Positions 14,569-37,000 of a stretch of 64,000 nt of DNA are shown piece after piece (the stretch's first letter is position 1; each line of letters starts with the position of its first letter). Under the pieces are notes generated by a model. The model saw only the letters and a list, made by a program, of their open reading frames with translations, searched no databases and had not been told where the DNA came from. The stretch is from the NCBI RefSeq assembly GCF_000143415.4, contig NW_003314265.1, positions 1,964,777-2,028,776 of the forward strand, read 5' to 3'. Origin of the DNA: Selaginella moellendorffii (taxonomy: Eukaryota > Plantae > Lycopodiophyta). The position numbers and the translations under genes were made by a program.

Positions 14569-17500
14569 TTAATAATGGTGATCTTTACAGACCCAGCCAC
14601 TTGGACTTTTGACGAGTCCAAAGCACTTCTTCATCATCAAGATTCGGTCCTTGCCATATCGTTGAGGTGAATTCTTTTTCACATACTCAAACAACTCCAC
14701 AATGTCATCTTTTGATGCTGGTTGCAACCTGTTATTGAGATCGCCTTCAAAGCAGGAGTCGATTGTAGCCTTCAAGCCATTTGCACCAAGCTCAATCAAG
14801 GTGCCAACCAGCTCCCCTCCCTCAGGCATTGCCACTTTACCGAGCTTTGCAAGGGTGAAACACATTGTGATGGCTGGGACGAAGATGTTGCTATACTTTT
14901 TGAACCATTGATTTGGGATAGTGATTGGTACTCCTGGGTACTTCTTCAAATCAACTGGGTGACAGCCGCTCGGATGCTCACATAAGTAGCTAATATTTGC
15001 TCGTTTCCCTATCAGTGGTGAATATTTTAGTAACAGACTTGACGCCATTGTAAGGTGCGGGAGTTTTGGACACTCCAGCTTAATGGATTCCAACAGTGAT
15101 GAGCAGCTCTTGATCAATGCGTTTTCTGTGTCTTTCAGGCCCTTTTGCAGCTTCTGTAAAGATTCTTTGATATCTGTTATGGAGACCTTAAAGTCCTCCA
15201 TATATATCTGAATCCCCTGCATTTGACGCTTATGTAATTGGTAGCAAAACTTGGCAAGGTTGCTCATGTCATCACTTTCAAACTTTGGGATCTCAACCTG
15301 CACAAGCTGTTGCTGCTGGCTTTGATACACAGGCACTATGTGCTGGTTGTATTCTTTGACAACCTCTTCAACAGCACGCTTACGTGGCTGAATAATCTCG
15401 TTGACTTCACTTGGCATCAAGAGTTCCAAGGCACTTGTGGAGTCACCAAAACCCCAGGTAAAGTGATAATCAAAGCCCTCCCTGGCTACCATCTGTTTAA
15501 CCTCTTGCAGTGCCCAACAGCTCTTGCTGTTTTCATTGCATGACCCCTGTTGTCGTGATGCTTTTCCAAATTGTCTTACCTTTACTGGATTTAGAGCATG
15601 CTCTTCAAGCTTGATGAAAGGACAGGCCCTGTTAGTTTCCTTGACTACACAATCCCGTATCTCCTTCATGAACTGCTCCCCTTTGAGTCCCCTCTTTTCT
15701 TCCTTGGGCACCATCAACATAATATCCACCCATTGCCGATCTGTCCAATGCTTATAATCCCCACCAATAGTCACCAGAACTTGAATGAGATCCTCTTGGA
15801 AGGAAACCCAACCAGCACCAATGTTACTTCCATGGCCCCATCTGTTACACATCTCCTTCACCTTGGCTTGAATAACTGCAAAAACTCCTACTTTCAACCA
15901 ACAAACACACAGACATCAATGTTTAATCTCAATCCCAGCAGTGAAGAGCATAATTACCTGATGGGAGAAGAACGAAGCCCTTCATAGTGTCGTCTGCTTG
16001 CAATCTCCGACCCCAACAATCATATGTTTGCTCGCTTTCAATCCATCCAGTGAACTCATCACGCAATAATGCAGGCACAATGAGGTGTTCTGGCAGATTT
16101 CGTGGCTCTGACCACCTTATGTCCCAGCTCCTCATGCCATCAGGAATCAAAACCCCCATCTCACAAAGCAGCTTGAGCAGGAAATAGATGTTGCCCTCTG
16201 CAGTCTCTCCAAGTATTTTGAGCTCTTGTACTGCTTTCGCAGTAGACCACTTGGGCTCCCCCCACTTCATTGTATTGTTTCTGTCTTGCTTAGGAATGAA
16301 AATTCCTAACACAGTATGGAGAAACCATGGCATGTCTAGAACTGCATTGTTGACAATCAATGCAGCTTCCTTGTCGTTTGGATGCGTGTTTTGATATGTG
16401 TCATCTGCCCCAAAGTAGACCACTTCTCCCATGTCATGTAGGCAGATGAATGTGTATTGTGCAGCAAATGCCTGATCTTCTTTCTCCCCCTGGAACCAAG
16501 CCTTGGACATCTCATGTAGGTCGACCACCCTCTGCTGGACAATTGTTTGTGCCCGTTTGTGGATATGATACCATGGTGTGGATGAAGCCCGCTCTCTGAT
16601 AACCTCATCACAAGTCCAGGGAATCACAGTAACTTCATTTATCATTTCGCCCACTGCTATAGCCAGCTTGGGCTTCAGTTCCTTCTGTACCTGACGAGCA
16701 TTCAACCCATTCACCTCGAAATAGTGATCACCACGTTGGCCCTGAACAAAGTCTAGCTTGTCCTTATACTTGAGTAACAGTGTCGTCGCAGCTGCTCGAG
16801 CTTCTACCAAGAAACGGTCATGACGAACAAAGATGTTGAGTACTAAGAAAATGGTGGGTTTCCTAGCTGGTGTTGCAGTTTGGTGGGCCGCTATGAAGCG
16901 AAGCCAGTATTGGAGCTCTGTTTCCAAGTCACCTCCAGGACCTCCAACCTTGCACACCACCATGAAGAGATCTTTGTCGCTGCCCCTGAGGAAATAGTGA
17001 TGAAAAGCGTGGTAGACCTCCTGGCCTCCCAGATCGTAAATCAGGAGTTTCTTCCTCTCTCCAAATCTGAGAGTCCTCCTCTCAATTCCCACTGTTGATG
17101 CATGATCCTGACTCACACACTGGCAGAGGGCTGCATAGGGGCGGACCAGATTGGTGGAGATGGTGGTCTTGCCCGAGGCAGTGTGGCCGCACATGAACAG
17201 CTTGGTAGTTGATGGTGTGACTGGAGGGTTTTCTAGAGCGCTTTGTGCAAGAACGGGGCTCTTCTGAAATAGAGCATTCCGGTACTTCACCCTCAACCAT
17301 CTGTCCTCCAACAGTTTGGAAGCCCATTCCCCGCGAATGCGCAGTCTCTGGATCCGGTTGCTGTAGTTGGCCTCCAAATTGCTGAGAATCGCATCTTGAT
17401 ACTCCTTGAGAGGAAGACTAAAGTACTCACATGAGGAGAAGCTTTCCCTCTGCTTAAGAAAATCGGTGTCAATATCAATGTTGAAAAAACCACTCACCTT

Positions 17501-18328
17501 CACCCCCAAGGAGAAACTTTCAAGCTTGCAATATGGGCTCGTCAGCAGCCGGCCCAGCAGCTGAACGATAGATAAAGGTAAATAGAATGGTGTTAACTCC
17601 AGGAACCAGAGCTTGGACTTCGCATTGTTGTTTATGCAATCTTCTAGCAGGGAAATCTCCGCAGGGCTGGGCTCATTTGAAATTCCTAGGCCCTCTATTG
17701 CTCCGCAGATTTGGCTGAGTAGCGCCTGATCATTTGGGATGTCGATCAGCGTAAGCTTCCGTAAACTTGTTCCAGCCTGGAAGAGGGCAGGAGTCAAGTA
17801 TTCATTCTGATCCAGGGACAGCTCCCAGATCTTGCAGGCTGGATCTTGCAGCAGCTTCTCCAGATGGGGCGAGCAATCGCAATGAAAAAACTCCAGACGT
17901 TCTAAATACTTCGGAAGTGTTGATCCTGCTAAAGCATCTAAATCTACAGCACAGGAATATACAAAAAGCGTCTTGAGCTTGATTGGCATCCCCTTGTGCT
18001 TGGCAGCAGCAATAGCTTCATCGAAGCTGCGAATCACCAACTCGCGAAAATCTATTTCATATATTCCAAGGCTGCTTAGCTTGGACACAGCTGCTTCTAG
18101 AAACCCCTCCGCTTTGTGGTAGCCCTCTCTGCGCAGGATTACGTGCTCCAGAATGTTGTCCTCCTGCAGCAGCAGCTCACGGAAGCCTTCGAAGTCTTCT
18201 GAATCGAATTTTGCTGCTCTATATCTGTTCAGCTCGAACACATGCGACACCCAATGGTACCACATCTCAGAGCGAATGCTTCCCAAATCCTCGTAATCAT
18301 CTATCCGGGCCTGCTTTGGCTCCCCCAT
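14569..18328 (-). CDS. TORNADO1-like LRR-Roc-COR (ROCO) GTPase, about 1230 aa, two exons (intron about 15889-15956); apparently intact
   Basis: N-terminal RI-type LRRs. Roc: KLFMCGHTASGKTT, STVGI, IYDLGGQEVYHAFHHYFL, ELQYWLRFI. COR: LHDMGEVVYF, LLCEMG, LIVPALL, WGRRL, PSG|VFAVIQ. Then a coiled coil and a TRN1-like tail (YLCEH, FGLVK...WVCKDH). Both long ORFs are open. Confidence 0.85.
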
Positions 18329-18889
18329 AACTTCCCTCAGAATACCCTCAGAAATTACAACAAATGTCGCTGATGAATGAACATCCAAATGACAACTTGG
18401 AAGTGGCTAGCAAAGATGAGTAAGTGGCTGCTTGGCTTTAAACATGAAATCAGATGCCAATTCTGATAGCAACGCAACCCTACGGTGCACGTTGTACAAA
18501 GTCATGCCAAATCTATTTCTCTTTCTTTTGCTTTTGCTTTGTAAAGGTAATTGTTTTTGTAAGCAATTAGCAAAGCACATGCGTTAGACAAGCTGTACAA
18601 GTTTCGTATGTCGTTCGATGCTTGAGCACAAGCCAGGTAGCTTGCGAAGAGAAGAATGCCAAGCAGCAGCTCGTTCTCTCACTCAGAGCGTCTCCGAGTC
18701 TAGAAGTTTACAATAACAACGATTTAATTACATGCTCTCAAATTCTCGATCTTGAATGGATTTTAGTCCACAAAAATGCGCCTCCTATATATTTACATGG
18801 AGAAAATGATTTACGGGAAACAGAGTATGTCATTTAACTAGAAAACTAACAAGATCTTCCAAGAAAGAAGAAAAAGAATAAGAAAGAAG

Positions 18890-19120
18890 ACCCACAGGGA
18901 TATCACATCCACGGCGTTGGGTCGCCGTTGCCAACAGGTTCTTCCATCTTGCCGGAAGAAAGAAAAAAAGAAAAGAAAAGAGGATTAAAGCAAGATCCGG
19001 AGAGACAAACCTGATCATGCAGTCGGATGAGGATGGAGGCCCAGCGCCGTGCGCGAAAACGAGCAGCGGCACCGGATTCAGGCGCGGTCGCTTTGTTTGG
19101 ATGGTTTCGAGCTCATCCAC
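18890..19120 (-). pseudogene. Fragment of a KANSL3-like alpha/beta-hydrolase gene
   Basis: PLLVFAHGAGPPSSSDCMIR|WKNLL resembles the VFAHGAGAPSSSDWMIRWK motif of plant KANSL3-like proteins. It is truncated after about 2 exons. Confidence 0.6.
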
Positions 19121-19334
19121 AGCGGGCTAGACAGCTTTTTGGTGGAGGGATTTGCTTAGAGTTCTTTTGCAGTACGGGGGACTGGCTTTCATGGCAGCGA
19201 TTTGGGAGGTACATTCTTGGAAGAGCTTGCTTGGATGGTTTCGAGCTCATCCACAGCGGGCTAGACAGCTTTTTGGTGGAGGGATTTGTTTAGAGTTTTT
19301 TTGCGGTACGGGGGATTGGCTTTCATGGCAGCGA
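19097..19334. repeat. Local tandem duplication (period 134 bp; second copy partial)
   Basis: ttggatggtttcgagctcatccacagcgggctagacag...ggcagcga occurs at 19097 and 19231. The paralogous region at 44721-44827 has one copy. Confidence 0.9.
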
Positions 19335-19582
19335 ACACGTCAATGTTATTGACTTGATTCTCTCGTGGTTTTCTTGCTGTTTTCTTTGGTTTAGACATCC
19401 GCGACGAAGAACGGGGATACGCAAAACAAAGAAGCAAAGAAAAGCGAGAATATTTGTTTCACATGAAATCATCAAGTGTGGTACTAAGAAACGAAAAGAT
19501 CTTTCCATTAAAGGGCTTTTTTTTATATTGCTTCAGGTTTCTAGGGTTTAGCGACGGAAGAAAACGTTTTAGACCATCAAAG

Positions 19583-20190
19583 ATGCTCCCGCCCGATCGA
19601 GCTCAGGGCCTACATTGCCACGGGTTCCAGGGACGTAGAGGGCGACGATGGGGAAGTACTCTCCCATTGTTTGGGACCTTGACGACGGCAGGAAATCTGA
19701 TGCCCTTGTCTATATTCTCCGAGGCGGCTGCTGCTGGAGAGGATGAAACACAGCCGATTGACACCGACGTGCTTTCCAGCGGTGGTGGTGACAAAGACAA
19801 TTCCGGGAGCCGAGATGAGGAGCAGCGGTACGAGCAGGAACTTTACGAGAAAGAGCTTGTGGAACTTAGCGACGACGATGGTAGTGCTCCAGACGAGCGC
19901 TTGGGGTCGGACTCGGACTAGGACGATAGATCGCTGCCCCCACAGCTACGTAGTATTGATATGCTGCGAGGCTGCCGAAGCGTGGACGAGTTTGAGAGGC
20001 TTAACAAGATCGACGAGGGGACTTGTGGGGTCGTCTATCGTGCTCGGGACAAGAAGAGTGGAGAGATTGTGGCGCTCAAGAGAGTGAAGATGGACCACGA
20101 GAGAGAAGGATTCCCCATGACTTCTGTACGGGAAATCAACGTTCTTCTCTCGTTTCACCATCCATCAATCGTGGATGTCAAGGAAGTTAG
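19583..20190 (+). pseudogene. Cyclin-dependent kinase G (CDKG/CDK11-like) 5' fragment
   Basis: KYSPIVWD N-terminal motif, then [44 protein letters not shown]...[27 protein letters not shown], then truncated. Confidence 0.88.
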
Positions 20191-20264
20191 TCTCATGCCT
20201 TACAAAGCAATGACCAGTGCTCTTTCTGAGTATCTGCACGACGACTGATCAAGCTCTTTTCTTG

Positions 20265-20875
20265 AACTTATGACAAAGAAGGAGCTCGGATCACTATTAC
20301 CGCAGGCGCTGGCGGAACCAATGCGCAGGTAACATCGTGTGCTAATATCTTTTTAGAAGCTTTGAGATTGTTTTACATACATTCCAGCACAGGATTGGGC
20401 TGAGATGCTTCTAAGGATGTACCAGCGATGGTCTACCAGGTCGGGCTTTAAGTCGACTGTGGTAGAGAGTTAAGAAGCTGAGATCAAATCGGCCACACTC
20501 GAGATCGACGGGAGATATGCGTATGGTTATATCTCCGGCGAGAAAGGCACGCACAGGCTGGTGAGACAATCGCCTTTCAACTCCAAAGGTCTACGACAGG
20601 TGAAGCAAACGTTAGTTTCATCGAAACTCTTGGGTCAACGTTAGCTTCTCTTCACAGACGAGCTTTGCAGGAGTGGGAGTGATGCCTCTGCTGGAAGAGA
20701 GGGAGATCGAGGGGGAGTTACCCGATGGGGACCTTGAGATTACAACGCGTAGATCTGGAGGCAAAGGCGGGCAGAACGTAAAAAAAGGTCGAGACTGCTG
20801 TTCGTGTCACGCACATTCCAACATGAGCATATCTCATGTCCAAGCAGTCGAGCTCCTCGCCAGTGCCAGTGTAAG
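20265..20875 (+). pseudogene. Second prfB duplicate fragment (inverted, introns retained, internal deletion)
   Basis: Reverse-complement match to 2341-3285, including [21 protein letters not shown] and RSGGKGGQN. Frameshifts are present. Confidence 0.9.
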
Positions 20876-20974
20876 ATCGTTCCATAGTTCCATGGTTAAT
20901 ACATTGTATTTTATTCTTCTTTAACACTTCGATAGGCTATAAGGCCCTATTTCGTTTGAGCTCCTTCCTGGCTG

Positions 20975-22020
20975 AGGATCGTGAGCTACAATGTGAATGG
21001 ACTGATGTCTCCAGCGAGATCGCTGCGCACCTTCTTGGACTTGTTTGACGCAGACATCATCTGCCTCCAGGTGATTTGGATTGGATTTTGGATTGTAGTT
21101 GCTGATTTGTTCTTTCTTCTCGAGAACAAAGAAACAGGCAGGAGCTCACGGCGGATATTGCCACAGCGTAAGGATACGAATCCTTCTTCTCTTGCACGCC
21201 CACCGTGAAGAAAGGCTGCCTCGGCTACTCAGGTAAGAATCACATGACTCGGTGTTAAAGATTTTGGTATTGTTTTGCATTGTTCGACTAGGTAGGGAGT
21301 TTGCGATTTAGAACTTTTCTTCATCCTTGGCATTGGATTAGAGCGCATTGCTGGTCAGGTGTGGCTACGTTTTGCAAGGTGGAGTGTGGCAACAATGTAG
21401 CGTTGCCTGTGGCTGCCGAGGAAGGCTTTACGGGTCTCTTGACTAGTGCCAAAGCCGAGCCTGATACCAGCCGAAATGTTTCCAAGCCCGCTTTTACACA
21501 GGAAACGGGCAGCAGGAAATTGCAGAGGCTGTCACAAAGCAGATTGACAGGGTTTTGCTATCAAAGGCATGAATCTTCTGACAAAATGAGCTGCACAGAG
21601 GTCGCAGTGCATGGGCAGAGCTCCAGCCTTGCGGATGGAATCCAGCAATCACCTGAATTATGTGACAATAACAACTGCTCAGAGGTTGCAGCTTGCCAGT
21701 CTGATGGATATGTCAGATGAAACACCGACGGAAAGCTCTCAGCAAAGCTTGGAAAAATCGGCAGCAGGCTGGGAAAGACTCAAGAGCTTGATGTCGCGAA
21801 ATCTTCCATTGTGCAAGGGACATGGTGAGCCTTGTGTCGGAGTTAAGAAGGCTGGCCCCAATCTTGGCCGTGGTTTCTACGTCTGTGCTCGAGCAAAGGT
21901 GATCTTCCTTGAAAGATGCTTCATATTTTATTCGTTGTTTCCAACAGGGCCCAGCTTCCAATCCTGAAGCAAGGTGCGATCATTTTCAGTGGTCTTCGTC
22001 CAGGACGTGAAAGAAGTGAA
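20975..22020 (+). pseudogene. Second APE2 duplicate with about 1.2-kb central deletion
   Basis: SYNVNGL...DADIICLQ and SGVATF...GLLTSA are joined at about 21452 directly to [11 protein letters not shown] and the zf-GRF exon. The start ATG is lost. Confidence 0.9.
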
Positions 22021-22366: not shown

Positions 22367-25300
22367 TGAGAAAGTTTGCTCGCTCTTGTCCTAGTCTAGA
22401 ATTTTCAATGAGAATTTTTTACTTGCATGCTACGGTCATGCGTGCACAGGGAGTAACTGGCTGAATTGCAGAAATCCTTTGCACTGTTGTTTTGTGAAAA
22501 CTTTGATGGTGTGGAGAAAGGTCTTAAGGTTTGATCTCTAAGTTCCCTGGACAGCACATGGATTATATGAGCTCTGGACATACAATATATGAACTATACC
22601 TTAAGTAGGCATGTTCGTCTTCTTTGAATAAAAATTCACTGCTTCTTCATTTTAGTAATTTTATTAAGCCTGTGCCCTTGTTCTTCAATAATGGTGATCT
22701 TCACAGACCCAGCCACTTGGACTTTTGACGAGTCCAAATCACTTCTTCATCATCAAAGATTCGGTCCTTGCCATATCCTTGAGTTGAATTCTTTTTCACA
22801 TACCCAAACAACTCCACGATGTCATCTTTTGATGCTGGTTGCAACCTGTTATTGAGATCGCCTTCAAAGCAGGAGTTGATTGTAGCCTTCAAGCCATTTG
22901 CACCAATCTCAATCAAAGTGCCGACCAGCTCCCCTCCCACAGGCAATGCCACTTTAACGAGCTTTGCAAGGTGAAAACACATTGTGATGGCTGGGACGAA
23001 GACGTTGCTATACTTTTTGAACCATTGATTTGGGATAGTGATTGGTACTCCTGGGTACTTCTTCAAATCAACTGGGTGACAGCCGCTTGGATGCTCACAT
23101 AAGTAGTTAATATTTGCTCGTTTCCCAATCAGTGGTGTATATTTTAGCAACAGATTTGACTCCATTGTAACGTGCGGGAGTTTCGGACACTCCAGCTTAA
23201 TGGATTCCAACAGTGATGAGCAGCTCTTGATCAATGCGTTTTCTGTGTCCTTCAGTTCCTTTTGTAAAGATTCTTTGATATCTGTTATGGAGACCTTGAA
23301 GTCCTCCATATATATATGTGCAACCCTTGCATTCGACGCTTGTGTAATTGGTAGCAAAAGTTGGCAAGCTTGTTCATGTCATCACTTTCAAACTTTGGGA
23401 TCTCGACCTGCACAGGTTGGCTTTGATACAATGTGCCGGTTGTATTCTGCGACAACCTCTTCAACAGCACGCTTACGTGGCTGAATAATCTCGTTGACTT
23501 CACTTGGCATCAAGAGTTCCAAGGCACTTGTGGAGTCATCAAAACCCCAAGTAAAATGATAATCAAAGCCTAGCTACCATCTGTTTAACCTCTTGCAGTG
23601 CCCAAGAGCTCTTGCTATTTTCATTGCATGACCTGACGTGAACTACGGGAATATTCCGAGAATATTCCATGGCCTGTGGGATTTAAGGCCGTAACACAGG
23701 GAGGTTGGCCTAGGGCTCATTATCTTATTCGTTTCATTGGTATTGGAACAGCATGTTCTTTTGGGGATGGTGGGTGAGCAAGACATTGATCCTGATGAGG
23801 AGTATGGCATTAGTGATGATAGCCATGACGATGCGGAAGAGACTTTTAATAATGTCGTTGTGTGGCAAGGATGCTAGATTACTAAGGTTCAGAGCGACAT
23901 AAAGGAGGTTAAAGATTCTATTAATCTCATTAAGGATTTCCTGCTTCGCATGGACCCTCAAGGGTTGAATTAATGTCATGTCCGTGATTAGTATTGGTAT
24001 GTCAAACATGCCAAGGATATGGTATTATGGAATGGAAATCATCATCGGATGTTTGTGATAGTCAAAAGGTTGATTCTTGGAATTATGAGAAAGTTGTTGG
24101 TCTCACAATCCTTGTGAAAATAAGGTGAAGATAAATTTCTTTGTGACGAAGCTTACAGGCCATGTTTCTTCGTGGTGGAAGAACTACATCAAAGCTAATC
24201 CAAAACCGACTTCTTGGACTGACAAAAGTTTTCCATGCTTCGTTTGTCAAGAAGTTTGAAAAGGTTGATTTTGTGAACTAGTTGTTAGAGATCCAGCAAG
24301 GGACTTTGTCTTTGGGCAAGTTCCGTGATCTTTGCCTTAGTCTTATGGGCACCTATAATGAGTTGTTACAATGTTTTATCAAATGATTGAGCTCAGTGGA
24401 TATGCAGCAGAAGGTCAAGAAGGATTTTCCAGCAATATTGACTGATGCTATCACTAAGGCTCAGATATTTTCGCCCAAACCATCAGTCAACTCTGGTCAA
24501 CGAGATAGTCTACAGAGTAGTCAATGTGATGACCAGCTCTCTAATTCTTCATATTCAAGGAAGAAACAGTCGTTATTCCGTTGTGGCTCGATGCATGAAG
24601 ATGGCAGTGAGGTTAAGAAACTTTGTTTGGACCAGCTGTAAGTGACTAATTTTTCCATTCTACTTTAATCACTTAACTATACCTCTGACCATTTGAAGGA
24701 GTCTCATTCACAACCTTCATAAGTCCAATTCCAAACTTGGGGCTTGCTCGCCCCGAGAAGGGCATCCATGCCTCTCAACCTTTGCACTTGGTCCAAGTGC
24801 TCCACGTGTCCAATCCCATGATCAACACCCTAAGGTACCACCAACTTATTAACCCATTACGCTAGGCCATGCCTATTCACCTTGGTCACATCGGTGGACC
24901 ACCACCTGCATTGCAATCCCATCTCTCCAAGACTGGGCCATCCGTCTAGGAGTGGTCATCCCAAATCCATTCCTTAGCATCCTTAGGATGTCGGCAGACA
25001 TGGGGAATAGCCTTCCCCAATATCTTCTTTCCAGTCCTTACTAAGTCCTTTTCTGTTCATGGCCATGCTCATCAACACTGCCACTGGATCAAGACCTATA
25101 GGCTTGACCATTATGTCCCATGGTCCTCTGGGACTTCCTCACCGTGTGACTGTGTCCTTGGTCACCACACCAGAGGGCTACTCCTTTTCCTGTTTATGGT
25201 TTGGGACATTGGGACAACATTTCGGAACACCGTGACCCTATGCAGACCTCATAGGTACTTTCCCCGCCTTCCACCTTTGGGTGCTCTAGCCATGGGCTTA

Positions 25301-25629
25301 GAGCGAGGTTCCATTGAGCCACGCCAGGTATCCAAGTAAGTAGTGCCACCCACACTTGGACTCGGAGCATCGGCCAATCAATCTCCTGAGGGAATTAGAG
25401 TTGGCTCTTGAACACTTCACCAAGCTACCCCATTTGTCGGTCCGTATTCACTCTAGCTTTGAACTTCCTAGTGGTTATCCCATCACCCAACACCTGGGTA
25501 CAGCCTTTCTGGGACAAACTAGCCTTTCCTAGCCAAACTGGCTCCACTGGAGTCCTCTCCCTTACTATACTTTTGGAGCTCACTAAATCCCCTAGGGTCT
25601 GGGAGACGAATGCTTTGGGCTTTCACACT

Positions 25630-25970
25630 CTCAGACTCGAACTCGGACTCAGACTTGGACTCGGGCTCAGACTTGGACTTGGACTCGGGCTTGGGCTCAG
25701 CCTCGGTCTCGGTCTCGGTCCCAGTCCTAGTCTCGGTCTCGATCTCGACTTCGGACTCCATCTCGGGTCCTTCTCGGACTCCATCTCGGGTCTATTTCGG
25801 ACTCCATCTTGGGTACATCTTGGACTCCATTTCAAGTCCATTTCGGACTCCATCTTGGGTTCATCTCGAACTCCATCTCAGACTCTATCTCGGGTCCATT
25901 TCGGACTCCATTTCAGGTCCATCTCGGATTCCATCTTGGGTCCATCTCGGACTCCATCTTGGGTCCATTT
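25630..25970. repeat. Hexamer-derived tandem array in LTR (ggactc/ggtctc/ggactccatctc)
   Basis: Degenerate 6/12/18-nt periodicity; yields low-complexity SDSD/LGLG ORFs. Confidence 0.85.
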
Positions 25971-26115
25971 TCTAGAGACTCTCTTATGGCTCGTTTCATG
26001 CTTGTTCCTTGAGCACTCCATTGGGAGTTCCACTCCCGCCCTCAACCTTTCAAGTCGGAGCTTTTAGTCCAAACGTGTTATGCTCGTTTGGTTTTTGCTT
26101 CGGCCACTACCATTG

Positions 26116-26711
26116 TGTAAGCAACCAAAGGGAACGACTTGAGAGACGATCCATGGGGTTCAAATATAGAGGGAAAGGGCCCATGAACAAAGAGTGCACC
26201 CCCTTTTCCAATTGGTTAAGGGTCTTGGGATACTTGGAGTTAAGCGTCCTTGGGGTTGAATAGTACTGGGCTGGGTGACCTCCCGGGAAGTCCAAACTCA
26301 GGAGCTTACATTTGGTATCAGAGGGGTCTCGGGTCCGACTTTGTTGGTTGGCTTAAGGAAATCGCACCACATGTTGATTGACATCTGGCTGGTCCAGTTT
26401 GCTCCCGCTGGGCTCGACCCGAGGGGTAGGGTGTCAAGAGAGTGAGGCTCTCGGGAGAGTTGCGGCTCTCAGCTTCCGTTCACGAGGGCGTGAACTTGCA
26501 GGGAAGCGTGGTGGATTGTAAGCAACCAAAGGGAACGACTTGAGAGACGATCCATGGGGTTCAAATATAGAGGGAAAGGGCCCATGAACAAAGAGTGCAC
26601 CCCCTTTTCCAATTGGTTAAGGGTCTTGGGATACTTGGAGTTAAGCGTCCTTGGGGTTGAATAGTACTGGGCTGGGTGACCTCCCGGGAAGTCCAAACTC
26701 AGGAGCTTACA
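26116..26711 (+). mobile_element. Cassandra TRIM retrotransposon (5S rDNA-derived segment in LTRs)
   Basis: 195-bp LTRs (26116-26310, 26517-26711) that look identical by eye, PBS tggtatcagag, perfect TSD cattg. Each LTR contains agttaagcgtccttggggttgaatagtactgggctgggtgacctcccgggaagtcc, matching 5S A-box/IE/C-box. Confidence 0.95.
26238..26293 (+). promoter_or_regulatory. 5S rRNA-like Pol III internal promoter in the Cassandra LTR (repeated at 26639-26694)
   Basis: Matches the 3' half of plant 5S rRNA (AGTTAAGCGTGCTTGGGCGAGAGTAGTACTAGGATGGGTGACCTCCTGGGAAGTCC). The 5' half of 5S is absent. Confidence 0.85.
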
Positions 26712-29700
26712 CATTGGTGCCCTTTTGGCTCCACTTTGGGGCTTAGGGATTTGTGTCTCACAACTCCACCACCCATAGATGAAGTTTGATGTCCTCATCA
26801 AACGGTAAACCATTTTTATAAAGTAACACCAACATGTATTACCCTTTCCATGCTTAGCACCTAGCCAATATTTATCAATGGTATGACACCGAAGGCTCAC
26901 CATGCCTTCTCCATCCTCTAAGGCGCATAGCCTCTTTAACATAGAGACTTGATCGACCACCTATGGTGGTTCTTTCCCTTTAATTGGTTTAGTTCTTGCT
27001 AAACCTGTTAGAGGCACCTCCTCTATCTCAATCCCAGTACTCACTTCTGAGTAGCCTCAGTTCCCATTGATATAAACTTACACTTTGGAACTTTTAAATT
27101 TGACTTGTCAGAGTCAATTTCTTAAGTGTCTCCGACACCTTGCATTGCACATATTATACAACTCCACTTCCCCATATTTAGAAGTTCTTTATTTGAGGGC
27201 ATTACCATCCTCTTTCCCATTTTGTGCGACCTTTGGCACTAAGTTCTAGTTATCCTAATTCGTGCTAGGGCTGTCCATGTCCATATCATTTGGCTACTTT
27301 ACCGCTTCCTACCTTGGAACTTCCACTTTCGCCAAATCGAAGCAATTGGGGATCCATCCTTGGAAACACATTGCCTTTCCCACAATTTGTTAGCACCCAA
27401 CACATTAGTGTTCTTGGCCTAACTTTGCATTTTGGATTCTTTCTCATGATTCCCATGGTTCTTTTTTTAGCCATTGGTTTTTTGCTTCTATCCTTGATTG
27501 TTGCACCCAATAACATCGGATCACTACCTCCATTATCGAGGTATCTTTTTGGTTCCATAGCAAAGACTTTGCTTTGCCAAATCCAGAAGGTGTTCACCCC
27601 TAGTACGTCTCTTTAGGATTTTCTATTATAGGCTCTATCTCTGGCCCAACTTTGTGACCCTCCCATGGGTTTCTTATAGAAACTATTTTCTTCGGACTCA
27701 TTATGCCATTGCACAGTCACAAATCATTTCCCTTAGATGTTCTTCCCACTTAGTCACCTTGACCAAGCCACACCATCATCAATAATTCAAACTAACACTT
27801 TGAACTATGAACTTTATCCCTTAACCTCACAAGGACCTTGTTCTTGTTTTAGACATAAGATCACCTAGTGATCACACCTTAGCACCTTAATAGGTTTGCC
27901 AATAGATATTAGGTCTTCCAAACCTTTAAATTGTTCACCATAAACACTTGGTGGTGCACCCAAGCCAGCCCTTTCGGTTAACAACTGAGATTGAGTGTCC
28001 CCATCTCATTCACCATGTCCTTGGTGCCATTCGCACCAAATGTTCAAGTTAGATATGCCGAGCCACACTAAGCAATCTAACCGTGCATCACGACTTTGAG
28101 GCATCCCTCGTTTGGCGGTGTGCCCAAACCAGTCTCCTCACTGAGAGTCCATGACCACTGAAAAATGAGTGTCTTCATATTCTAAACCATCACCATGCCC
28201 TAGTGATTTGGGACTCGAACCCAAGCATTAAAGGGTCGGGACTCAAACCCAACCTCCATATATGCATCTACGGATGGCATTGCACAGGATGCCTGGCGTG
28301 ACTCCCCACGCCGGTGCACCAACATGTACTTAAAGCGCACTATAGATCACAACTTAGGAACCTAGTTCCTTCGCACTGCCAAGTCCTCTCACTTGATAAA
28401 TCTATGGTCATGCATGGACTCCTCTATGCTCGGCCCCATGGGCCACCCCTTTTGAAGTTAGCACCTTCGACTAGGGGATTTGTTCCCCTGACTTGCCAAT
28501 CTCATTTAGCAAGTCATTTGGCCACTATAACATAGTTCATGCATAAGCGTGAAGTCTTTAACCATTGACTTTCGTTCAAAACCCTCTTTTTGAACACTCG
28601 GGAACTACTTCCCCAACCTTGATAGCCTCGCCTCATGGCCAGCTTCAAGACCAACCTTTTGTTGCGCCACTCTGATTTCGCACACTCTAGGAACCATTTA
28701 CACTTGGTTTTCTAGGTACTTATTTACCTAGAATTGTCTTTGGGAACCTTCAAGGAATTCTGTTCCTTGGTTTGCTAAGGTTTCTCCTTTGTAAGCTCCC
28801 TACTCACTATATGGTCTAATATGAATAATTCCACATTTTAGACTCTCCATAGCATCGCGGTTGCTAGTAATAACATCCTCGAACACCCTCTTGATTCTCC
28901 ATTCTCAACTTGCATAATCACCCTTGGTCATGCTTGTCAATTTTTATGGTTTGGTTCTATCCCTTTATTATTTGCCTTTTGGTTCCATACATTTCTTTCG
29001 GTCATTTTCCTCCAGACTAGGAAGGTAGCTTTGCATTTTCTATCATGCCTTGGCAAGTATTCATAGGGATGAACCTACCTGATAGCCTAGGGAGTGGTTC
29101 CTCAATTTAAATTTGCTCACATTGTAATCCCACACATTAGGCTTACCGTTGCTATTTATGGGCTTTTGTATGCCCATCACTAGCCTTGCCAAAATTCTTT
29201 TTTGGCTTTGTCTAATTTGGGTAGATGGACTTTTCCCATCTCTGCAACCTTGGACATTTAGATAACACCTCCTATCCATCATTTGCTAAGGACTTTGTCC
29301 CTTGGGCATTATCCATTACCCTCATGACACAAAACACCCCTCCTAATGTTCTAGAGTGCTTGGGTGTTTCAATGATGGCCTCTTTAGCAATGAGCATTCC
29401 CTTTACGATATTGATTTATTATATCGCAACATAAGTAATTTATCTTCCCATAAGGGTATATCTAACTTTTTTATCCCGATAAAAAGTCTTAGGTAGTTAC
29501 ATTCTACCAGTTTAACTAATTATTTTGCACCTTTTGCTTAGTTACCTCATAGTTGTCAAGTCTTACAACTCATTGCTAGTGCTTCCACACCTCCATCATT
29601 ATTTGGGTCACCACAGTCTAATCGCATGCCTTTTAGCTTAGGCTATGTCATTCCCAATTTCATTAGGATTCCTTTGGGAAGGGGTTTTCATGAACCCACC

Positions 29701-29818
29701 AACTTGACCTCAAGGCAACACGCCTTGGCACATTTGGTGTCTCTACACTATCGGCTCTACAAGCCGACCTTTATGACAGTTCCCACTTGTGTCGGGGTCT
29801 TTGCCAAGACCAAAGCAG

Positions 29819-31622
29819 TGTAAGCGACTAATTTTTCTATTTTACTTTAGTCACTTACCCACACCTCCGACCACTTGGAAGAGTCTCACTCGCAATCTCC
29901 ATAAATCCTATTTTCGGACTTGGGCTTGTTAGCCCCGAGAATGGCATCCCCGCCACTCAACCTTTGCACTTGGTCCCAGTTCTCCACTTGTCCGGTCCTA
30001 TGACCGACACCCCAAGGTACCATCAACATATTAGCCTGTTACGCTATGGCCATGCCCATTCACCTTGGTCACATCGGTGGTCTGACACCACCTACATTGC
30101 AATCCCATCTCTCCAAGACTGAGCCATCTGTCCATGAGTGATCATCCCAGATCCACTCCTTAGCATCCTTAGGATGCCCATAGATATGGGGAATAGCCTT
30201 CCCCAATATCTCCTTTCTGGTCCCCACCAAGTCCCTTTCTGTCTTTAGCCGTGTTCGCCAACACTGCCATTGGATCAAGGCTCACAGGCCCGACCACTAA
30301 GTCCCACGGTCCTTTGGGACTTCCTCACCACACGACTGTATCCTTGGTCACTACACTAGAGGACTACTCCTCTTCCTTTCCACAGTCTGGGCCTTTGGGA
30401 CAACATTTCGGAACACCGTGGCTTTACGCAAGCCTCGTGGGTACTCTCCCCGCCTTCCGCCTTTGGGTGCTCTAGCCATGGGCTTAGAGCAAGGTTCCGT
30501 TAAGCCATGCCTGGTATCCAAGTAGGTAGTGCCACCCACACTTGGACTGGAAGCATCGGCCAGTCGATCTCCCGGGGGAACTAGAGCCGGCTCTTGAACA
30601 CTTCACCAAGCTACCCCACTTGTCAGTCCGTATTCACTTTAGTCTTGGACTTCCCAGTGGGCAGCTCATCACCCAACACTGGGTACAGCCTTCTTGGGCC
30701 AAATTGGCCTTTCCTGGCCAAACTGGCTCCACTACAATCCTCCCCCTACTATACTTTTGGAGCTCACCAAACCCCCCAGGGTCTGGGAGACGAACACTTT
30801 GGGCTTTCACCCTCTCAGACTCGAACTCGGACTCGGACTCAGACTTGGACTCGGACTCGGACTCAGACTTGGACTCGGACTCGGACTCAGGCTCGGGCTC
30901 GGGCCCAGGCTTGGGCTCGGCCTCCGCCTCGGTCTCGGTCTCGGTCCCGATCTCGGTCTCGGTCTCGGTCCCGGTCTCGGTCTTGACCTCGGACCCCATC
31001 TCGGGTCCTTCTCGGACTCCATCTCAGATTCCACCTCGGACTCCATCTTGGGTCCATCTCGGACTCCATCTCGGGTCCACCTCGGACTCCAACTCGGTCT
31101 CCATCTCGGGTCCACCTCGGACTCCAACTCAGGTCCATCTCGGACTCCACCTCGGACTCCAACTCGGGTCCATCTCGGATTCCATCTCGGACTCCACCTT
31201 GGACTCCACCTCGGACTCTAACTCGGGTCCATCTTGGATTCCATCTCGGACTCCACCTCGGACTCCACCTAGGACTCCAACTTGGGTCCATCTTAGACTC
31301 CATCTCGGACTCCACCTCGGACTCCATCTCGGACTCCACCTCGGACTCCAACTCGGGCCCATCTCGAACTCCATCTCGGGTCCATCTCGGACACTTCCAC
31401 GTGTCATATGTTGGTCTTTTTGAGTCCCTTTTTAGAGCCTCGCTTATTGCTCGCTTCGTGCTCATTCCTCGAGCACTTTGTTAGGAGTTCCACTCCCTCT
31501 CTCGACCTTTCAAGTCGGAGCTTTTAGTCCAAATGTGTTACGCTCTTTGGCTTTCACTTCGGCCACTACCACGTGGTGCTCTTCCGGTTCCACTTTGGGG
31601 CCTAGGGATTTTGTGTCTCACA
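29819..31622 (-). mobile_element. Solo LTR of the same large-LTR family inserted within its own family member
   Basis: Full LTR copy (tgtaagcgac...tctcaca) flanked by perfect TSD agcag (29814-29818, 31623-31627), with no adjacent PBS or PPT. Confidence 0.9.
30815..31392. repeat. Expanded hexamer-derived tandem array in the solo LTR
   Basis: tcggac/tcggtc runs followed by ctcggactcca(c/t/a) units; longer than in the other two LTRs. Confidence 0.88.
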
Positions 31623-33589
31623 AGCAGTTGTTTCTCATGCCAACTATTAATTAGCACTACACCATAGTGTTCACACACAACTCTATACTAAAGTTGATTT
31701 TTTTTGAGGAACACCTTTCCCATGACTTTAGTATGGCACATTCTGCCATTAATGAGATATCCACTATTCTCATACTTGGATCCTATGATCCCCCCATCCT
31801 TTGTGGGGTACAAACACCTCAGTCCAAATGCTTTCATCAATCCTTTAAGATTTGTTCCTTGACTTTATTTGAGTCATCTAGCCTTTTGGACTTTGTTAAT
31901 CCGATGATCTGTGAGGTCCTACTTTTGATGTGTCAGCTCATTGGAATACAACTTTTTGTATTCATGTCCTACTCACAAGGACCATCTTTGCAAGTGTTAT
32001 TTTGACACTTGATTTTCTTCTCTAGGGGCAACCTTTTACCCCTTAGGACCGTGATGAGAATACCAACTCATCCTCTAAGTACACCCCCAACTCCTTGGGT
32101 TGTTCGAGCATTTATTAAAGGTAGCCCCAGCTACCATTTCTAGGACTTGTGTCCTCTTTCGTATTTGACCTCTCATGGTCATCAATTCCGGTCTTAAATT
32201 CATGAGCACCAGCCTCAACTATGTGAGGATAATCTTGTGACTCCTTTATTGTTTTGGAGTCTGCATCTTTCCCGTGATCCCAACTATAGTTGTTTACCAT
32301 AACTACATTAGCCCATTTGCTGAGTCAAACGTTCATCTGGATCACATCCTCAACTCCCTGAGGAAACCCTTATACTGTTCCCAAGATCCCGAAGTCGTTT
32401 CATTATTGGCTCTTTTCTATCCACCGCCTCACCTAGAAGTTCACACATAAACTGTAGTGGAGAGCCATATCTTCCCGACCTGCTATTCCTCAAAGATAGG
32501 CCCATTCTTAGGACCTTTCGATGCCAACATTGGCAGTGATATACTTGAGCACCAATAAAAGTCGGACTAAGGAACAACTCCGATACCAAGTTGTAAGCGA
32601 CTAATTTTTTCATTCTACTTTAGTCACTTAACTATACCTCTGACCACTTGAAGGAGTCTCATTTACAACCTCCATAAGTCCAATTCTGGACTTGGGGATT
32701 GCTCGCCCCGATAAGGGCATCCATGCCCCTCAACGTTTGCACTTGGTCCAAGTGCTCCACGTGTCCAATCCCATGATTAACACCCCAAGGTACCATCAAT
32801 TTACTAGCCCGTTACGCTAGGCCATGCCCATTCACCTTGGTCATATTAGTGGACCACCACTTGCATTGCAATCCCGTCTCTCCAAGACTGGGCCATCCGT
32901 CCAGGAGTGGTCATCCCAGATCCATTCTTTAGCATCCTTAAGATGTCGGCAGACATGGGGAATAGCCTTCCCCAATATCTTCTTTCCGGTCCTTACCAAG
33001 TCCCTTTCTATCCATGGCTGTGCTTGCCAACACTGCCACTGGATCAAAACCCATAGGCCCGACCACTATGTCCCATGGTCCTCTGCTGGGACTTCCTCAC
33101 CGTGTGACTGTGTCCTTGGTCACCACACTAGAGGGTTATTCATCTTCCTATTCATGGTCTGGGACTTTAGGTCAACATTTCGGAACACCGTGGCCCTACG
33201 TGGCCTTCATAGGTACTTTCTTTGCCTTCCACCTTTGGGTGCTCTAGCCATGGGCTTAAAGCGAGGTTCCGTTGAGCCACACTAGGTTTCCAAGTAGGTA
33301 GTGCCACCCACACTTGGACTAAGAGCATCGGCCAGTCGATCTCCCGGGGGAACTAGAGCTGGCTCTTGAACATTTCACCAAGCTACCCCGCTTGTCGGTC
33401 CGTATTCACTCTAGCTTTGAACTTCCTAGTGGTTATCCCATCACCCAACACCTGGGTACAACCTTCCTGGGACATACTGGCCTTTCCTGACCAAACTGGC
33501 TCCACTAAAGTCTTCCCCCTTACTATACTTTTGGAGTTCACTAAACCCCTTAGGGTCTGGGAGATGAACGCTTTAGGCTTTCACCCTCT

Positions 33590-34035
33590 CAGACTCGAAC
33601 TCGGATTCGGACTCGGACTCGAGCTTAGACTTGGACTTGGACTCAGGCTTGGGCTCGGTCTCGGTCTCAGTCTCGGTCCCGGTCTTGGTCCCGGTCTCGG
33701 TCTCAATCTCGACTTCGGACTCCATCTCAGGTCCTTCTCGGACTCCATCTTAGATTCCATCTCGGGTCCATCTCGATCCATCTCGGACTCCATCTTGGAC
33801 TTCATCTCGAGTCCATTTCGGGTCCATCTCGGACTCCATCTCAGACTCCATCTCAGGTTCATCTCGGACTCCATTTCAGGTCCATCTCGAACTCCATCTT
33901 GGGTTCATCTCGAACTCCATCTCAGACTCCATCTCGGGTCCATTTCGGACTCCATCTTAGGTCCATCTCGAAATCCATCTCGGATCCATCTCGGACTCCA
34001 TCTCGGGTCCATCTTGAACTCCATCTTGGGTCCCT
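33590..34035. repeat. Hexamer-derived tandem array in the 5' LTR
   Basis: Same unit family as 25630-25970 and 30815-31392. Confidence 0.85.
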
Positions 34036-37000
34036 TTTCTAGAGACTCTCTTATGGCTCGCTTCATGCTTATTCCTTGAGCACTCCATTGGGAGTTCCAC
34101 TCCCGCTCTTGACCTTTCAAGTTGGAGCTTTTAGTCCAAATGTGTTACACTCGTTTGAATTTTGCTTTGGCCACTACCACGTGGTGCCCTTTCGGCTCCA
34201 CTTTGGGGCTTAGGGATTTGTGTCTCACATCAGCGAGAGAAGAACAAGGTGGAGGGCAATTGTTTTTGTTGTCACAAAGTTGGACATCATGGCAAGGATT
34301 GTCCTCTTGTGAAGGGATCAAAGAATGCTAAAGTGAATGTGGTGGAATCCATTGTGGATACAGCTCAGGCATATGTTGTGGTGGCTTTTCCACACCCTGT
34401 GGCAAAAATTCAAGAATCTAAGTCTCGAGTTCGTATCAACTTTGTCGAGATTAATGGTTCTATGCGCAATCAACTTGTGAAGGCCAAGGGGGACATTCAG
34501 GGTAATGCTATTAGTATTCTTTTCGATCTAGGTGCTACACACAACTTTTTGAGTTCCAAGGTGGTGAAGAAACTTGGTTTGCCTGTGGAAAAGAGTTCAG
34601 TAATCTACGAGGTGGTTATGGTAGATGGACATAACACTCATGTTTACGGTGAATGGGTTCTGAGTGTTTCTTTGATGGTTCAAGGGATTCTCGACCATCC
34701 TTTGTTCCAGGTTATGAATCTTGGTCGCACAGACGTTATTCTTGGGAAGGAATGGTTTTATGGCAGGAAGCCAAGGATTGATTGCGAGCGTAATGTTCTG
34801 CGTATCGAAGTTGGTGGCACTATAAAAGAGATTGTCAGGACAGACAATAGTGATACTCCATTGATTAACGCTTTGGAGTGTTAATTCTTTTGTGGTGTCC
34901 CCGTTTCTTTCTAATATGATCATGTCTGATTTGGATATGTTCGTGAGCATGGGGCTAGGGTGGATTCCATTCAGGAGGAGTTCCGTGACGTATTTCCAGA
35001 TGAGTTACCTAATGGTTTGCCTCCCAAACGTGGCATTCAGCATGAGATTGATTTGGTTCCTGGAGCTACTCCTTATCAGCGATAACCGACTTGTACTAGT
35101 CCCGCTGAAGATGAGGAGATTAATAGACAGCTTGCTGAATACCTTCGAAAAGGGTGGTTACGGATCAGCAAGTCTCCTTGGGCTGCTCCAGTGGTGATGG
35201 TCATAAAGAAAGATGGTACATGGCATCTCTACGTGAACTACAAGGGATTGAATGATATGACAGTGAAGAATATGTTCCCGATCCCTCATATTGATGATTT
35301 GCTTGATGGTGCTTGATATTTTTCGAAGATTGATTTGAGGCAAGGATATCATCAAATTTGTGTCAAGTTAGAGGATGTTTCGAAAACTGCATTTTGGACA
35401 AGGACAGGTCGCTACAAGTTTTTAGTGATGCTGTTTGGTTTGACAAATGTTCCTGCAACTTTTCAAAGATTGATGAATCAAGTTCTACAACCTTACTTAG
35501 GAAAGTTTGCAATTGATTATTTTGATGATATCCTGGTATTCAACTCTTCCATGGAAGAACATGAAATGCATGTGAGAAGTGTTTTACAACTTTTGAGGGA
35601 CAACAAGCTCTACTCGAAGTTATCTAAGTGCAAGTTTTTTTTAGAAGAGATTGGATATCTCAGGCATATGATTTTGGTACATGGAGTGAGAGTTGATCCC
35701 ACAAAGATTCAGGCTGTGGTTGATTGGCCTATATCTTCGACAGTGCATGATCTCCATAGTTTCCTTGGTATGGCTGGAGTTTTTCGACAATTTGTGAAGG
35801 ACTTTTCAAGGATAGTAGCCCCTTTAACTGATCTTCTCCAGAACACGTCAAAACATGCTACTATTCATGGTTGGGATGAGAAGTGTGAAGTGGCATTTCA
35901 ACGTTTGAAGCAGTATTGTATCTCTACTCCGGTGTTGAGAGAGATGCAAGTGACATTGCTATTGGAGCCGTCTTGCTTCAAGTTGGGCATCCTTTTGCGT
36001 ACATGAGCCATAAGTTTGATGCCACACAGCGGAATTGGCCTATTTGAGACAAGGAGTTATATGCTGTGATTGCTGCTGTGAAGGAATGGCAACATTATCT
36101 ATATGGATTAGACTTCCATGTGGATTCAGACCATCAGCCTCTCCAATATTTCAGTCAATAAAAGGATCTTCAAGGCCGCCTTGCTCGTTGGTAAGAGTTT
36201 CTACAAGAAATGTCTATTAAGATTTGATACGAGCATGGAGGTGACAATAAGGTGGTTGATGCATTATCCAGGATAGTAAATTCTATCTTATTCATGAAGC
36301 TATCCAGTGATCTCTTGGATGAGCTTAAGGAGTTTGCTGACTTCGACTCCTTTATCATTGATATTCACGCAAAGGTTTTGTTGAGGGACGCCTCTACAGA
36401 TTTGAAGGGTGACAAGTTTGCATCATTTGAAATACGAGATGGAATTCTATTGAAGAAGGGACATGTAGTGGTTCTTTGTGTTGAAAAACTCATCAAACAG
36501 ATTTTGGTTGAGTGTCATGATGTGCCAAGTGCTGGGCATCCGAGGGTATTGAGAACGTATATGTTGGTGAAGAGGCATTTCTTTTGGCTTGGGATGAAAT
36601 CAGATGTTGAGAAGTATGTATGTAGTTGTTTGACCTACTAGGTGGTCAAAGTTGATCATCAGAAGCTCGCTGGCTTCTATCATCCTTTACATGTACTCGA
36701 GAATAAGTGGGATAGCATCTCGATGGACTTTATCATTGGTTTGCCCAAAACCTTTCGAGGAAATTATGTTATTTGGGTTGTTGTGGATCGCTTAATGAAG
36801 ATGGCTCACTTCTTCTCTGTGAAGACAATGATAAAAGCTTCTGAACTTGCTCAGTTATTTGTAGACCGGTTATTCAATCTCTATGGTTTGCTGGGTGACA
36901 TTGTGAGTGATTGGGATCCTAAGTTCACGTCCAAGTTTTGGCAAACGGTCTTTGAGAAACTAGAGACTAAGCTGAGCATAAGTAGTGGTAAGCATCCACA

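Follow-up and report, generated by a model that had tools for sequence, protein, structure and literature searches.

The window analysed here, a 64,000-nucleotide stretch of the genome of the lycophyte Selaginella moellendorffii, carries an intact gene encoding leucine-rich repeats (LRRs) followed by a Roc GTPase and a COR domain, together with a broken copy of the same gene. Comparison by blastn identified the two as a segmental duplication. The intact gene (copy 1, W1) lies at 14569-18328 on the minus strand, and joining its three exons (Table 1) gave a translation of 1214 aa that is exactly XP_024525065.1. RefSeq names this product 'protein TORNADO 1 isoform X1', which was matched by an 819-aa open reading frame (ORF) at 15929-18388 (minus strand), and gives lengths of 1214 and 1213 aa for isoforms X1 and X2. 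The Joint Genome Institute (JGI) model of the gene lies on scaffold GL377569.1, which shares 4720 bp with the window at 100% identity. Intron 1 is removed in the RefSeq model and kept in the JGI model.

Expression was assessed with Logan contigs from four studies; the RNA nature of these runs was guessed, and splicing is what shows it. Both introns have the expected GT..AG ends on the strand of the gene. Intron 2 was spliced (joint 15886>15957) in the sequencing runs X1 and X2. Intron 1 was spliced (joint 17449>17498) in run X2 and unspliced in a contig covering 17371-17478 from run X10. Retention of this intron would add 16 residues after the last regular LRR, and unspliced contigs could also be pre-mRNA. 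On copy 1 the contigs lie on the exons only and end at the start-codon region, with none on 18482-18795, and the patches specific to copy 1 (see below) are spanned by zero-mismatch contigs of 220-242 nt. Copy 1 is an intact, transcribed and spliced gene. Contigs with other letters in place of 17400-17507 correspond exactly to spliced forms of three relatives of copy 1 (L2a, L1 and L4b), indicating that several members of the family are transcribed. Directly upstream of the start codon of copy 1 there are 740 bp (18335-19074) that are missing from copy 2, where 18334 joins 19075 at 44699/44700, and also from contigs of two runs, in which the joint 18334>19075 has non-canonical ends. This segment is either an insertion in the promoter/5′ region of copy 1 or the trace of a deletion common to the other copies.

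Copy 2 (W2, 22623-44699), which the original prediction had placed on a par with copy 1 as a ROCO paralogue, is spread over 22 kb. Its LRR exon is split at about codon 241 by a 4.6-kb Ty1/copia-type retroelement with terminal direct repeats (39378-39481 and 43848-43961, about 105-114 bp, 87.7% identical) and a 4-nt target duplication (TGGT) at the joined ends of the insertion. A deletion of 821 bp, corresponding to segment 16516-17337 of copy 1, has removed the Roc domain, and the second piece of copy 2 ends at its junction; the remnant of intron 1 in this piece has lost its donor site by deletion. A 14.5-kb insertion flanked by direct repeats of 104-113 bp (23634-23737 and 38044-38156, 81% identical) splits the copy once more, and several frameshifts and three stops are found when copy 2 is read in the frame of copy 1. 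Copy 2 is therefore a tandem pseudogene in fragments, devoid of Roc, twice split and interrupted by frameshifts and stop codons, and not a second working receptor. The 14.5-kb insertion itself contains three repeats of 1.3-1.5 kb (within 24631-34229, 82-88% identical) and internal tandem arrays with a period of about 100 bp around 30900-31400 and 33700-34030.

Copies 1 and 2 belong to a family with at least eight copies on five scaffolds (W1, W2, L1, L2a, L2b, L3, L4a and L4b). The sample of eight was drawn from the window and four further scaffolds, roughly 170 kb. Only W1 and L3 are intact; L1 is interrupted by a single nonsense codon (557), L4a by a stop at 1048 and L2a by two C-terminal frameshifts, and W2, L2b and L4b are wrecks. 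The family shows birth-and-death evolution. Trees built from all eight copies were star-like, with bootstrap values of 24-75%, and for this reason none of our claims rests on branching order. The possibility that some copies are the other haplotype of one another was rejected: outside the LRR no ROCO pair is closer than a synonymous divergence (dS) of about 0.047, so that none is a simple allele of another.

A phmmer search of 1.84 billion representatives found no match for the LRR part (aa 1-310) outside S. moellendorffii, and a word-based search with the LRR part alone returned only a family member. Similarity beyond the family starts at about aa 312, where the closest proteins are other Selaginella 'ROCO family proteins' and proteins of the fern Adiantum, with 30-36% identity. 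A ROCO protein of TRN1 length with Pfam COR-A and COR-B (P0007) is 24% identical over 38% of the query. With an LRR part that matches nothing outside the species and at least eight copies, copy 1 did not emerge as a TORNADO1 orthologue from this comparison, which included no verified Arabidopsis TRN1 sequence. The lineage-specific expansion proposed from two copies comprises at least eight, with an LRR part for which the searches returned matches in S. moellendorffii only; the accompanying label 'TRN1-like' proved to be a database name only, the nearest non-family relatives being about 33% identical and alignable from Roc on.

The original prediction had described copies 1 and 2 as near-identical LRR stretches interrupted by short replaced patches, and this pattern was confirmed. 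A MAFFT alignment of the LRR exon (18328-17498 with 44693-43961 plus 39375-39114) contained 97 differences in 825 aligned nt (88.2% identity). The variance/mean ratio of differences per 15-nt bin was 1.55, compared with 0.87 in 5000 permutations (P = 0.0002). Neighbouring differences within 3 nt of each other numbered 46 where 29.8 were expected (P = 0.0002). The COR/C-terminal part, for which scattered changes had been reported, showed 107 differences in 1784 nt with no significant clustering (P = 0.06 and 0.23), so that divergence is not uniform along the gene. The DNA example singled out earlier (17942-17965 in copy 1, about 44293-44321 in copy 2) indeed consists of 48 identical bases, a patch of 26/29 nt with 12 substitutions and a 3-nt insertion, and 25 identical bases. 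Six of the seven patches listed at that time begin at position 5-7 of the LxxLxL unit. The seventh (GVKVSGFFNI vs LLPWFFQHVHL) is mostly the 48-nt intron 17450-17497, the donor of which is lost in copy 2. Codons 14-48 in the N-terminal cap (N-cap), absent from the earlier list, are as variable as the LRR patches. When all eight copies were aligned at the DNA level, long stretches that are almost invariant, synonymous sites included, were seen to be broken by patches that differ in nearly every copy.

Codon models revealed strong selection in this exon. The ratio of non-synonymous to synonymous substitution rates (omega, dN/dS) under model M0 was 1.40, and the comparisons M1a/M2a and M7/M8 both gave twice the log-likelihood difference (2dlnL) as 106.9 (p about 6e-24), with omega2 = 6.5 in 16% of the codons and 60% of the LRR codons at omega = 1. 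The selected class remained when only the five least-damaged copies were used (2dlnL 49.4, omega2 6.0), when three LRR segments were each given their own tree (2dlnL 68.0, 16.4 and 7.4, all significant), and when codons within two of a gap were removed (201 codons left; 2dlnL 53.8, omega2 5.5). In the control region, Roc-COR-C-terminal part, omega was 0.67 and only a diffuse class at 1.65 was found (2dlnL 10.1). A class of repeat positions fixed in advance (5, 7, 8, 9 and 10) had an omega of 2.83 (p = 6e-4 against 1), and the N-cap reached 5.19. Since the synonymous tree lengths of this register class and of the N-cap (0.54 and 0.18, with 0.41 for the remaining codons) are near normal, the excess is not accounted for by locally elevated mutation. 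Pairwise Nei-Gojobori (NG86) counts, in which the hypervariable codons were defined each time from the six other copies (leave-two-out), gave an omega above 1 at these codons in 27 of the 28 pairs (range 0.92-7.6); dN there was 2.7-7.3 times as high as the dS calculated for the remainder of the gene. In the comparison of copies 1 and 2, the hypervariable codons had dN 0.39, dS 0.29 and omega 1.33. Both the dN/dS above 1 at the patch sites and the positively selected class in the M7/M8 comparison, with its omega of about 6, therefore accord with the prediction. About one LRR-exon codon in six is under strong diversifying selection, chiefly at positions 7 and 8 of the LxxLxLxx units, in the loop behind them and in the N-cap, and the leucine core, positions 2-3 and the Roc-COR module are conserved.

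The AlphaFold2 (AF2) model of the N-terminal 345 residues (predicted local distance difference test, pLDDT, 84.6; predicted template modelling score, pTM, 0.84) has 11 strand-helix units. No Pfam LRR model fires on the copy-1 product; as judged from the predicted model, the LRR part is a ribonuclease-inhibitor-like solenoid of alternating beta-strand/alpha-helix units with an LxxLxL core, and its best Foldseek matches are NLRP9, NLRP3, NLRP14 and ribonuclease inhibitor (E about 1e-6, TM about 0.5). Twenty-two sites had a naive empirical Bayes (NEB) posterior of P > 0.9 (16, 19, 20, 26, 29, 31, 66, 67, 88, 90, 91, 92, 124, 125, 148, 195, 222, 223, 246, 250, 251 and 254), half of which (11) occupy register positions 5 or 7-10 (Fisher 9e-5). 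The mean P(omega > 1) was 0.69 at positions 7-8 and 0.24 at position 5, and close to zero for the core leucines (0.04) and positions 2-3 (0.01). In the model the selected sites lie where each strand ends on its C-terminal side and in the loop that connects it to the helix. Corresponding residues of consecutive repeats are stacked on one another, so these sites should form one stripe along a rim of the horseshoe, as far as can be deduced from the repeat register and the secondary structure assigned by DSSP. Of the earlier suggestion that the variable residues share one face, the part concerning register holds, with variation at positions 7-8 and the following loop and conservation of the core and positions 2-3; the part concerning three-dimensional co-location stands by inference only.

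Exchange between copies has also left its mark. The pairwise homoplasy index (PHI) test gave P = 0.0005 for the LRR exon and 0.027 for the rest of the gene, about half of the informative site pairs being incompatible. Patch D of copy 2 is identical to that of L3, and its N-cap differs at 3/54 positions from L2a; in copy 1, patches N2, C and E show 0-1 differences from L3 (1/33 in patch C), and patch F differs at 1/21 positions from L2a and L4a. For patches B, F and H, in copy 1 as in copy 2, the sampled copies offered no close relative, and when the roughly 170 kb were searched for donors, near-identical counterparts turned up for three patches only (C in copy 1, D and N1 in copy 2). Thus exchange, by recombination or gene conversion, reshuffles some patches, and others are unique to one copy. 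Selection and gene conversion had been offered as alternative mechanisms; given the site-model results on one side and the PHI value and mosaic sharing of patches on the other, both processes operate. Upstream of L4a (L004:9430-9556) we also noticed two stray LRR fragments of 60-70 nt, one of which has the copy-1/L3 version of patch C (13/17 11-mers) and may be either a conversion donor or what is left of another copy.

Behind the LRRs, the copy-1 protein consists of Roc, COR-A, COR-B, a coiled coil and a C-terminal domain of no recognised fold. Roc was detected by Pfam PF08477 at aa 360-471 of the spliced protein (36.5-37.1 bits, cut-off 27), and COR-A and COR-B follow it directly, as in ROCO proteins. 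As to GTP binding and hydrolysis, the alignment showed conservation of motifs: the P-loop (G..GKTT) and DxxGQ residues are invariant across the family and its fern relatives, and the G4 motif NKxD is not obvious in the family. The copy-1 sequence by itself did not reach the Pfam threshold for COR-A. A Roc-COR profile built from the family and its fern and Selaginella relatives matched LRRK2 1330-1676 (Roc and COR-A) with E = 2e-18 and also aligned to the prokaryotic Roco proteins of M. barkeri and C. tepidum. COR-B was recognised from structure: aa 780-940 of the AF2 model aligned with 3dpu_B (C. tepidum Roco; VIA-align Z 10.3, root mean square deviation 2.8, 129 residues) and with LRRK2 1707-1860 (Z 8.5), the model of aa 780-1214 being mediocre (pLDDT 68.7) and weak over about aa 940-1214 (pLDDT 40-70). 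For the latter region, a long helix and an alpha/beta part (window 14569-15410), there was no Pfam match, a sequence search of the PDB gave coiled-coil noise only, Foldseek gave nothing and VIA-align only generic long helices. The C-terminal domain is nevertheless conserved from Selaginella ROCO subfamilies to Adiantum ferns, with invariant C, E, G, H and W residues, and is likely to be the output module. A Pfam scan found neither NB-ARC nor NACHT, only Roc and weak generic P-loop matches, which places the protein outside the nucleotide-binding LRR receptors (NLRs). Its N-terminus has no signal peptide-like features, and the protein therefore probably acts inside the cell.

Taking these results together, we think it more likely than not that, in the birth-and-death family to which the expressed LRR-Roc-COR gene and its dead twin belong, the LRR rim has been selected for recognition, most likely of pathogen molecules. 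The variable rim of the horseshoe would be a ligand-recognition surface engaged in an arms race; binding of a ligand would be relayed to the Roc-COR GTPase switch, as to NB-ARC in NLRs, and the signal would then pass to the conserved C-terminal domain, so that the protein would serve in the intracellular recognition of pathogen molecules. As a non-NLR receptor family the genes are credible from their sequences; their immune role is one that we only infer. Such a role inside the cell is attractive because the NLR genes reported for S. moellendorffii number only about 2 (PMC3782705). For the means by which a plant so equipped recognises specific pathogens, the ROCO family offers a concrete, testable candidate. 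Ferns hold related ROCO proteins, and one may tentatively go further and imagine, although we consider it doubtful, that in lycophytes and perhaps ferns LRR-Roc-COR proteins form a polymorphic intracellular immune repertoire comparable to the NLRs of seed plants, with Roc-COR replacing NB-ARC and the C-terminal domain executing the response.

Several points weigh against the reading we favour. Damage in six of the eight copies, together with an omega of about 0.7 outside the LRR, points to weak constraint on the whole family. Because two haplotypes are mixed in the assembly, some 'paralogues' could be very divergent alleles. The codon models were run with our own GY94/F3x4 likelihood code, with NEB rather than Bayes empirical Bayes posteriors, on eight sequences. 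Recombination, which is present here, is known to inflate site-model tests; the segment-wise trees and the pairwise counts agree with the main result. Finally, it is from register and DSSP, not from coordinates, that we place the selected sites on one face, and the presumed output domain has no recognisable fold.

The most serious of the other explanations, and one to which we still give a modest chance, accepts the selection as real and assigns it to a function other than immunity, such as self/non-self or gamete recognition, perception of symbiont signals, of transposon or viral products in a non-classical sense, or of a fast-evolving endogenous partner. All of the selection evidence is silent on the ligand, and TORNADO1, the only plant ROCO that has been studied, is a developmental gene (cited in PMC11378527). 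However, the family is only about 24-33% identical to TRN1-like and other ROCO proteins and does not share their LRR part. In addition, clustered tandem copies, frequent pseudogenes, exchange and hypervariable LRR positions make up the classic signature of a resistance-gene cluster, which the family shows in full, up to an omega of about 6 on a presumably exposed LRR rim.

It is improbable, in our estimation, that the patchwork has no adaptive value and arose by short-tract gene conversion from divergent or non-allelic donors, or by multi-nucleotide hot-spot mutation, misread by codon models. The significant PHI test with its many incompatible site pairs, the mosaic sharing of patches with L3 (D of copy 2, C of copy 1), the stray 60-nt fragment with patch C upstream of L4a and the somewhat raised NG86 dS at hypervariable codons are all what this explanation would lead one to expect. 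Conversion, however, shuffles variation and makes no non-synonymous excess, and for the majority of patches in copies 1 and 2 the roughly 170 kb searched contained no donor. The patches keep to one structural register, away from the core and positions 2-3, and preserve the reading frame in the intact copies. By maximum likelihood, the synonymous tree length of the a-priori class amounts to just 1.3 times the value for the remaining codons, and the N-cap lies below that value, against a dN that is 3-5 times higher.

We likewise give little credence to the view that the family is merely decaying under constraint relaxed by duplication, the differences between copies 1 and 2 being largely pseudogene drift: the wrecked and interrupted copies (W2, L2b and L4b; L1, L2a and L4a), the omega of 0.67 outside the LRR, the 60% of LRR codons at neutrality and the modest omega of 1.33 between copies 1 and 2 alone fit such a view, but relaxation cannot raise omega above 1, the class with omega of about 6 persists in the five least-damaged copies, the stretches between the patches are almost invariant in all eight, and copy 1 and several paralogues are transcribed and correctly spliced.

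The duplicated unit extends beyond the genes (Table 1). In the upstream flank a tandem duplication of about 150 bp is found at copy 1 (19027-19352), where 19075-19236 and 19227-19334 both match 44700-44862, and the sequence is single in copy 2. Between copy 1 and the 3′ end of copy 2 lie fragments of protein kinase, RF-1 release-factor and GRF-zinc-finger nuclease genes (19961-20248, 20673-20924 and 21611-21967). The same kinase, RF-1 and GRF-zinc-finger fragments flank ROCO copies on scaffolds L001, L003 and L004, which indicates that a composite unit was duplicated. At the left end, window 1-8101 matches 15604-23699 of L003 (scaffold GL377692) over 8.1 kb with 98.2% identity, and the L003 block is probably the second haplotype of this part; no pair of ROCO copies matches so closely. 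The intact L3 lies just before the 8.1-kb block in L003, and the comparison suggests a further ROCO copy immediately to the left of the window on GL377569. Minus-strand ORFs at 46554-47220 have an ABC/SMC-type signature (LDEPTTNLD) and possibly represent a Rad50-like gene. The assembly has a gap of 213 N at 49336-49548.

Table 1. Features of the two ROCO copies and their shared flank (window positions; copies read on the minus strand)
Feature	Position	Strand	Description
Copy 1, exon 1	17498-18328	-	N-terminal cap and LRR units, aa 1-277; contains all hypervariable patches
Copy 1, exon-1 patches	N-cap 18236-18289; A 18125-18139; B 18038-18067; C 17942-17965	-	Hypervariable
Copy 1, exon-1 patches (continued)	D 17876-17893; F 17741-17752; H 17558-17599	-	Hypervariable
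Copy 1, intron 1	17450-17497	-	48 nt, GT..AG, in frame, stop-free
Copy 1, exon 2	15958-17449	-	Linker, Roc GTPase (about 16868-17203), COR-A
Copy 1, intron 2	15891-15957	-	67 nt; 70 nt with alternative NAGNAG acceptor
Copy 1, exon 3	14569-15890	-	COR-B (aa about 780-940), long helix, C-terminal domain (aa about 940-1214), stop codon
Upstream flank common to both copies	19075-19745 (copy 2: 44700-45573)		91-98% identical; part of the duplicated unit
Copy 2, 5′ piece	43961-44699	-	LRR codons 1-241, open for 244 aa (ORF 43959-44693); 88.6% identical to 17605-18334
Ty1/copia-type retroelement in the copy-2 LRR exon	39376-43960	+	Pfam rve and RVT_2 on its ORFs
Copy 2, second piece	39114-39375	-	Last LRR units, intron-1 remnant, linker; 78.6% identical to 17337-17608
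Copy 2, third piece	38151-39116	-	COR region and start of exon 3; 92.0% identical to 15531-16516
Nested repeats/retroelement DNA splitting copy 2	23634-38150		About 14.5 kb; Pfam rve and SH3_Tf2-1 on ORFs 36642-37583
Copy 2, 3′ piece	22623-23633	-	C-terminal domain; 91.0% identical to the 3′ part of copy 1; frameshifts, tblastn matches in two frames

Full-text literature searches found no paper on Selaginella ROCO genes. Among known systems, Arabidopsis TORNADO1 (TRN1/LOP1) has the same LRR-Roc-COR order. TRN1 is a conserved single-copy developmental gene, whereas the Selaginella family is multi-copy and hypervariable. The LRRs of ribonuclease inhibitor and animal NLRPs are the best structural matches of the LRR model, although there is no sequence homology (12-20% identity) and the Selaginella repeats are irregular and of lesser length (22-34 aa). 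The zone that varies in the Selaginella family, the C-termini of the strands and the beta-alpha loops, is also where ribonuclease inhibitor makes most of its ligand contacts.

Plant NLR (NB-ARC-LRR) clusters resemble the family in their tandem arrangement, birth-and-death evolution, many pseudogenes, transposon insertions and exchange between copies, as well as in having a P-loop NTPase switch beside the LRR, whose exposed positions are under diversifying selection. Unlike NLRs, the Selaginella proteins have no NB-ARC, their switch being a Roc GTPase with COR, and their LRR is N-terminal and of the ribonuclease-inhibitor/animal-NLRP type. Positions 2-3, which also vary in plant NLRs, are conserved in the Selaginella family, where variation is restricted to positions 5, 7 and 8, the following loop and the N-cap.

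A further parallel is provided by the LRR-ROCO proteins of the brown algae Ectocarpus and Saccharina, which likewise have N-terminal LRRs followed by Roc-COR, form an expanded family and contain selected LRR sites (M1/M2, M7/M8). They have been proposed as immune receptors, a role deduced from their evolution only (Zambounis et al. 2012; PMC11378527). The algal genes carry every LRR on an exon of its own, 72 nt long, and diversify by exon shuffling and alternative splicing (PMC11378527). This one-LRR-per-exon architecture was not found in the Selaginella family: a single exon of 831 nt encodes the entire LRR domain, which diversifies by substitutions at positions 7-8 and by exchange between copies. 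The two lineages belong to different kingdoms, and their LRR sequences have no detectable homology. If our interpretation is true, the Selaginella family would represent a second, independent case, after that of brown algae, in which ROCO proteins have been recruited for variable recognition.

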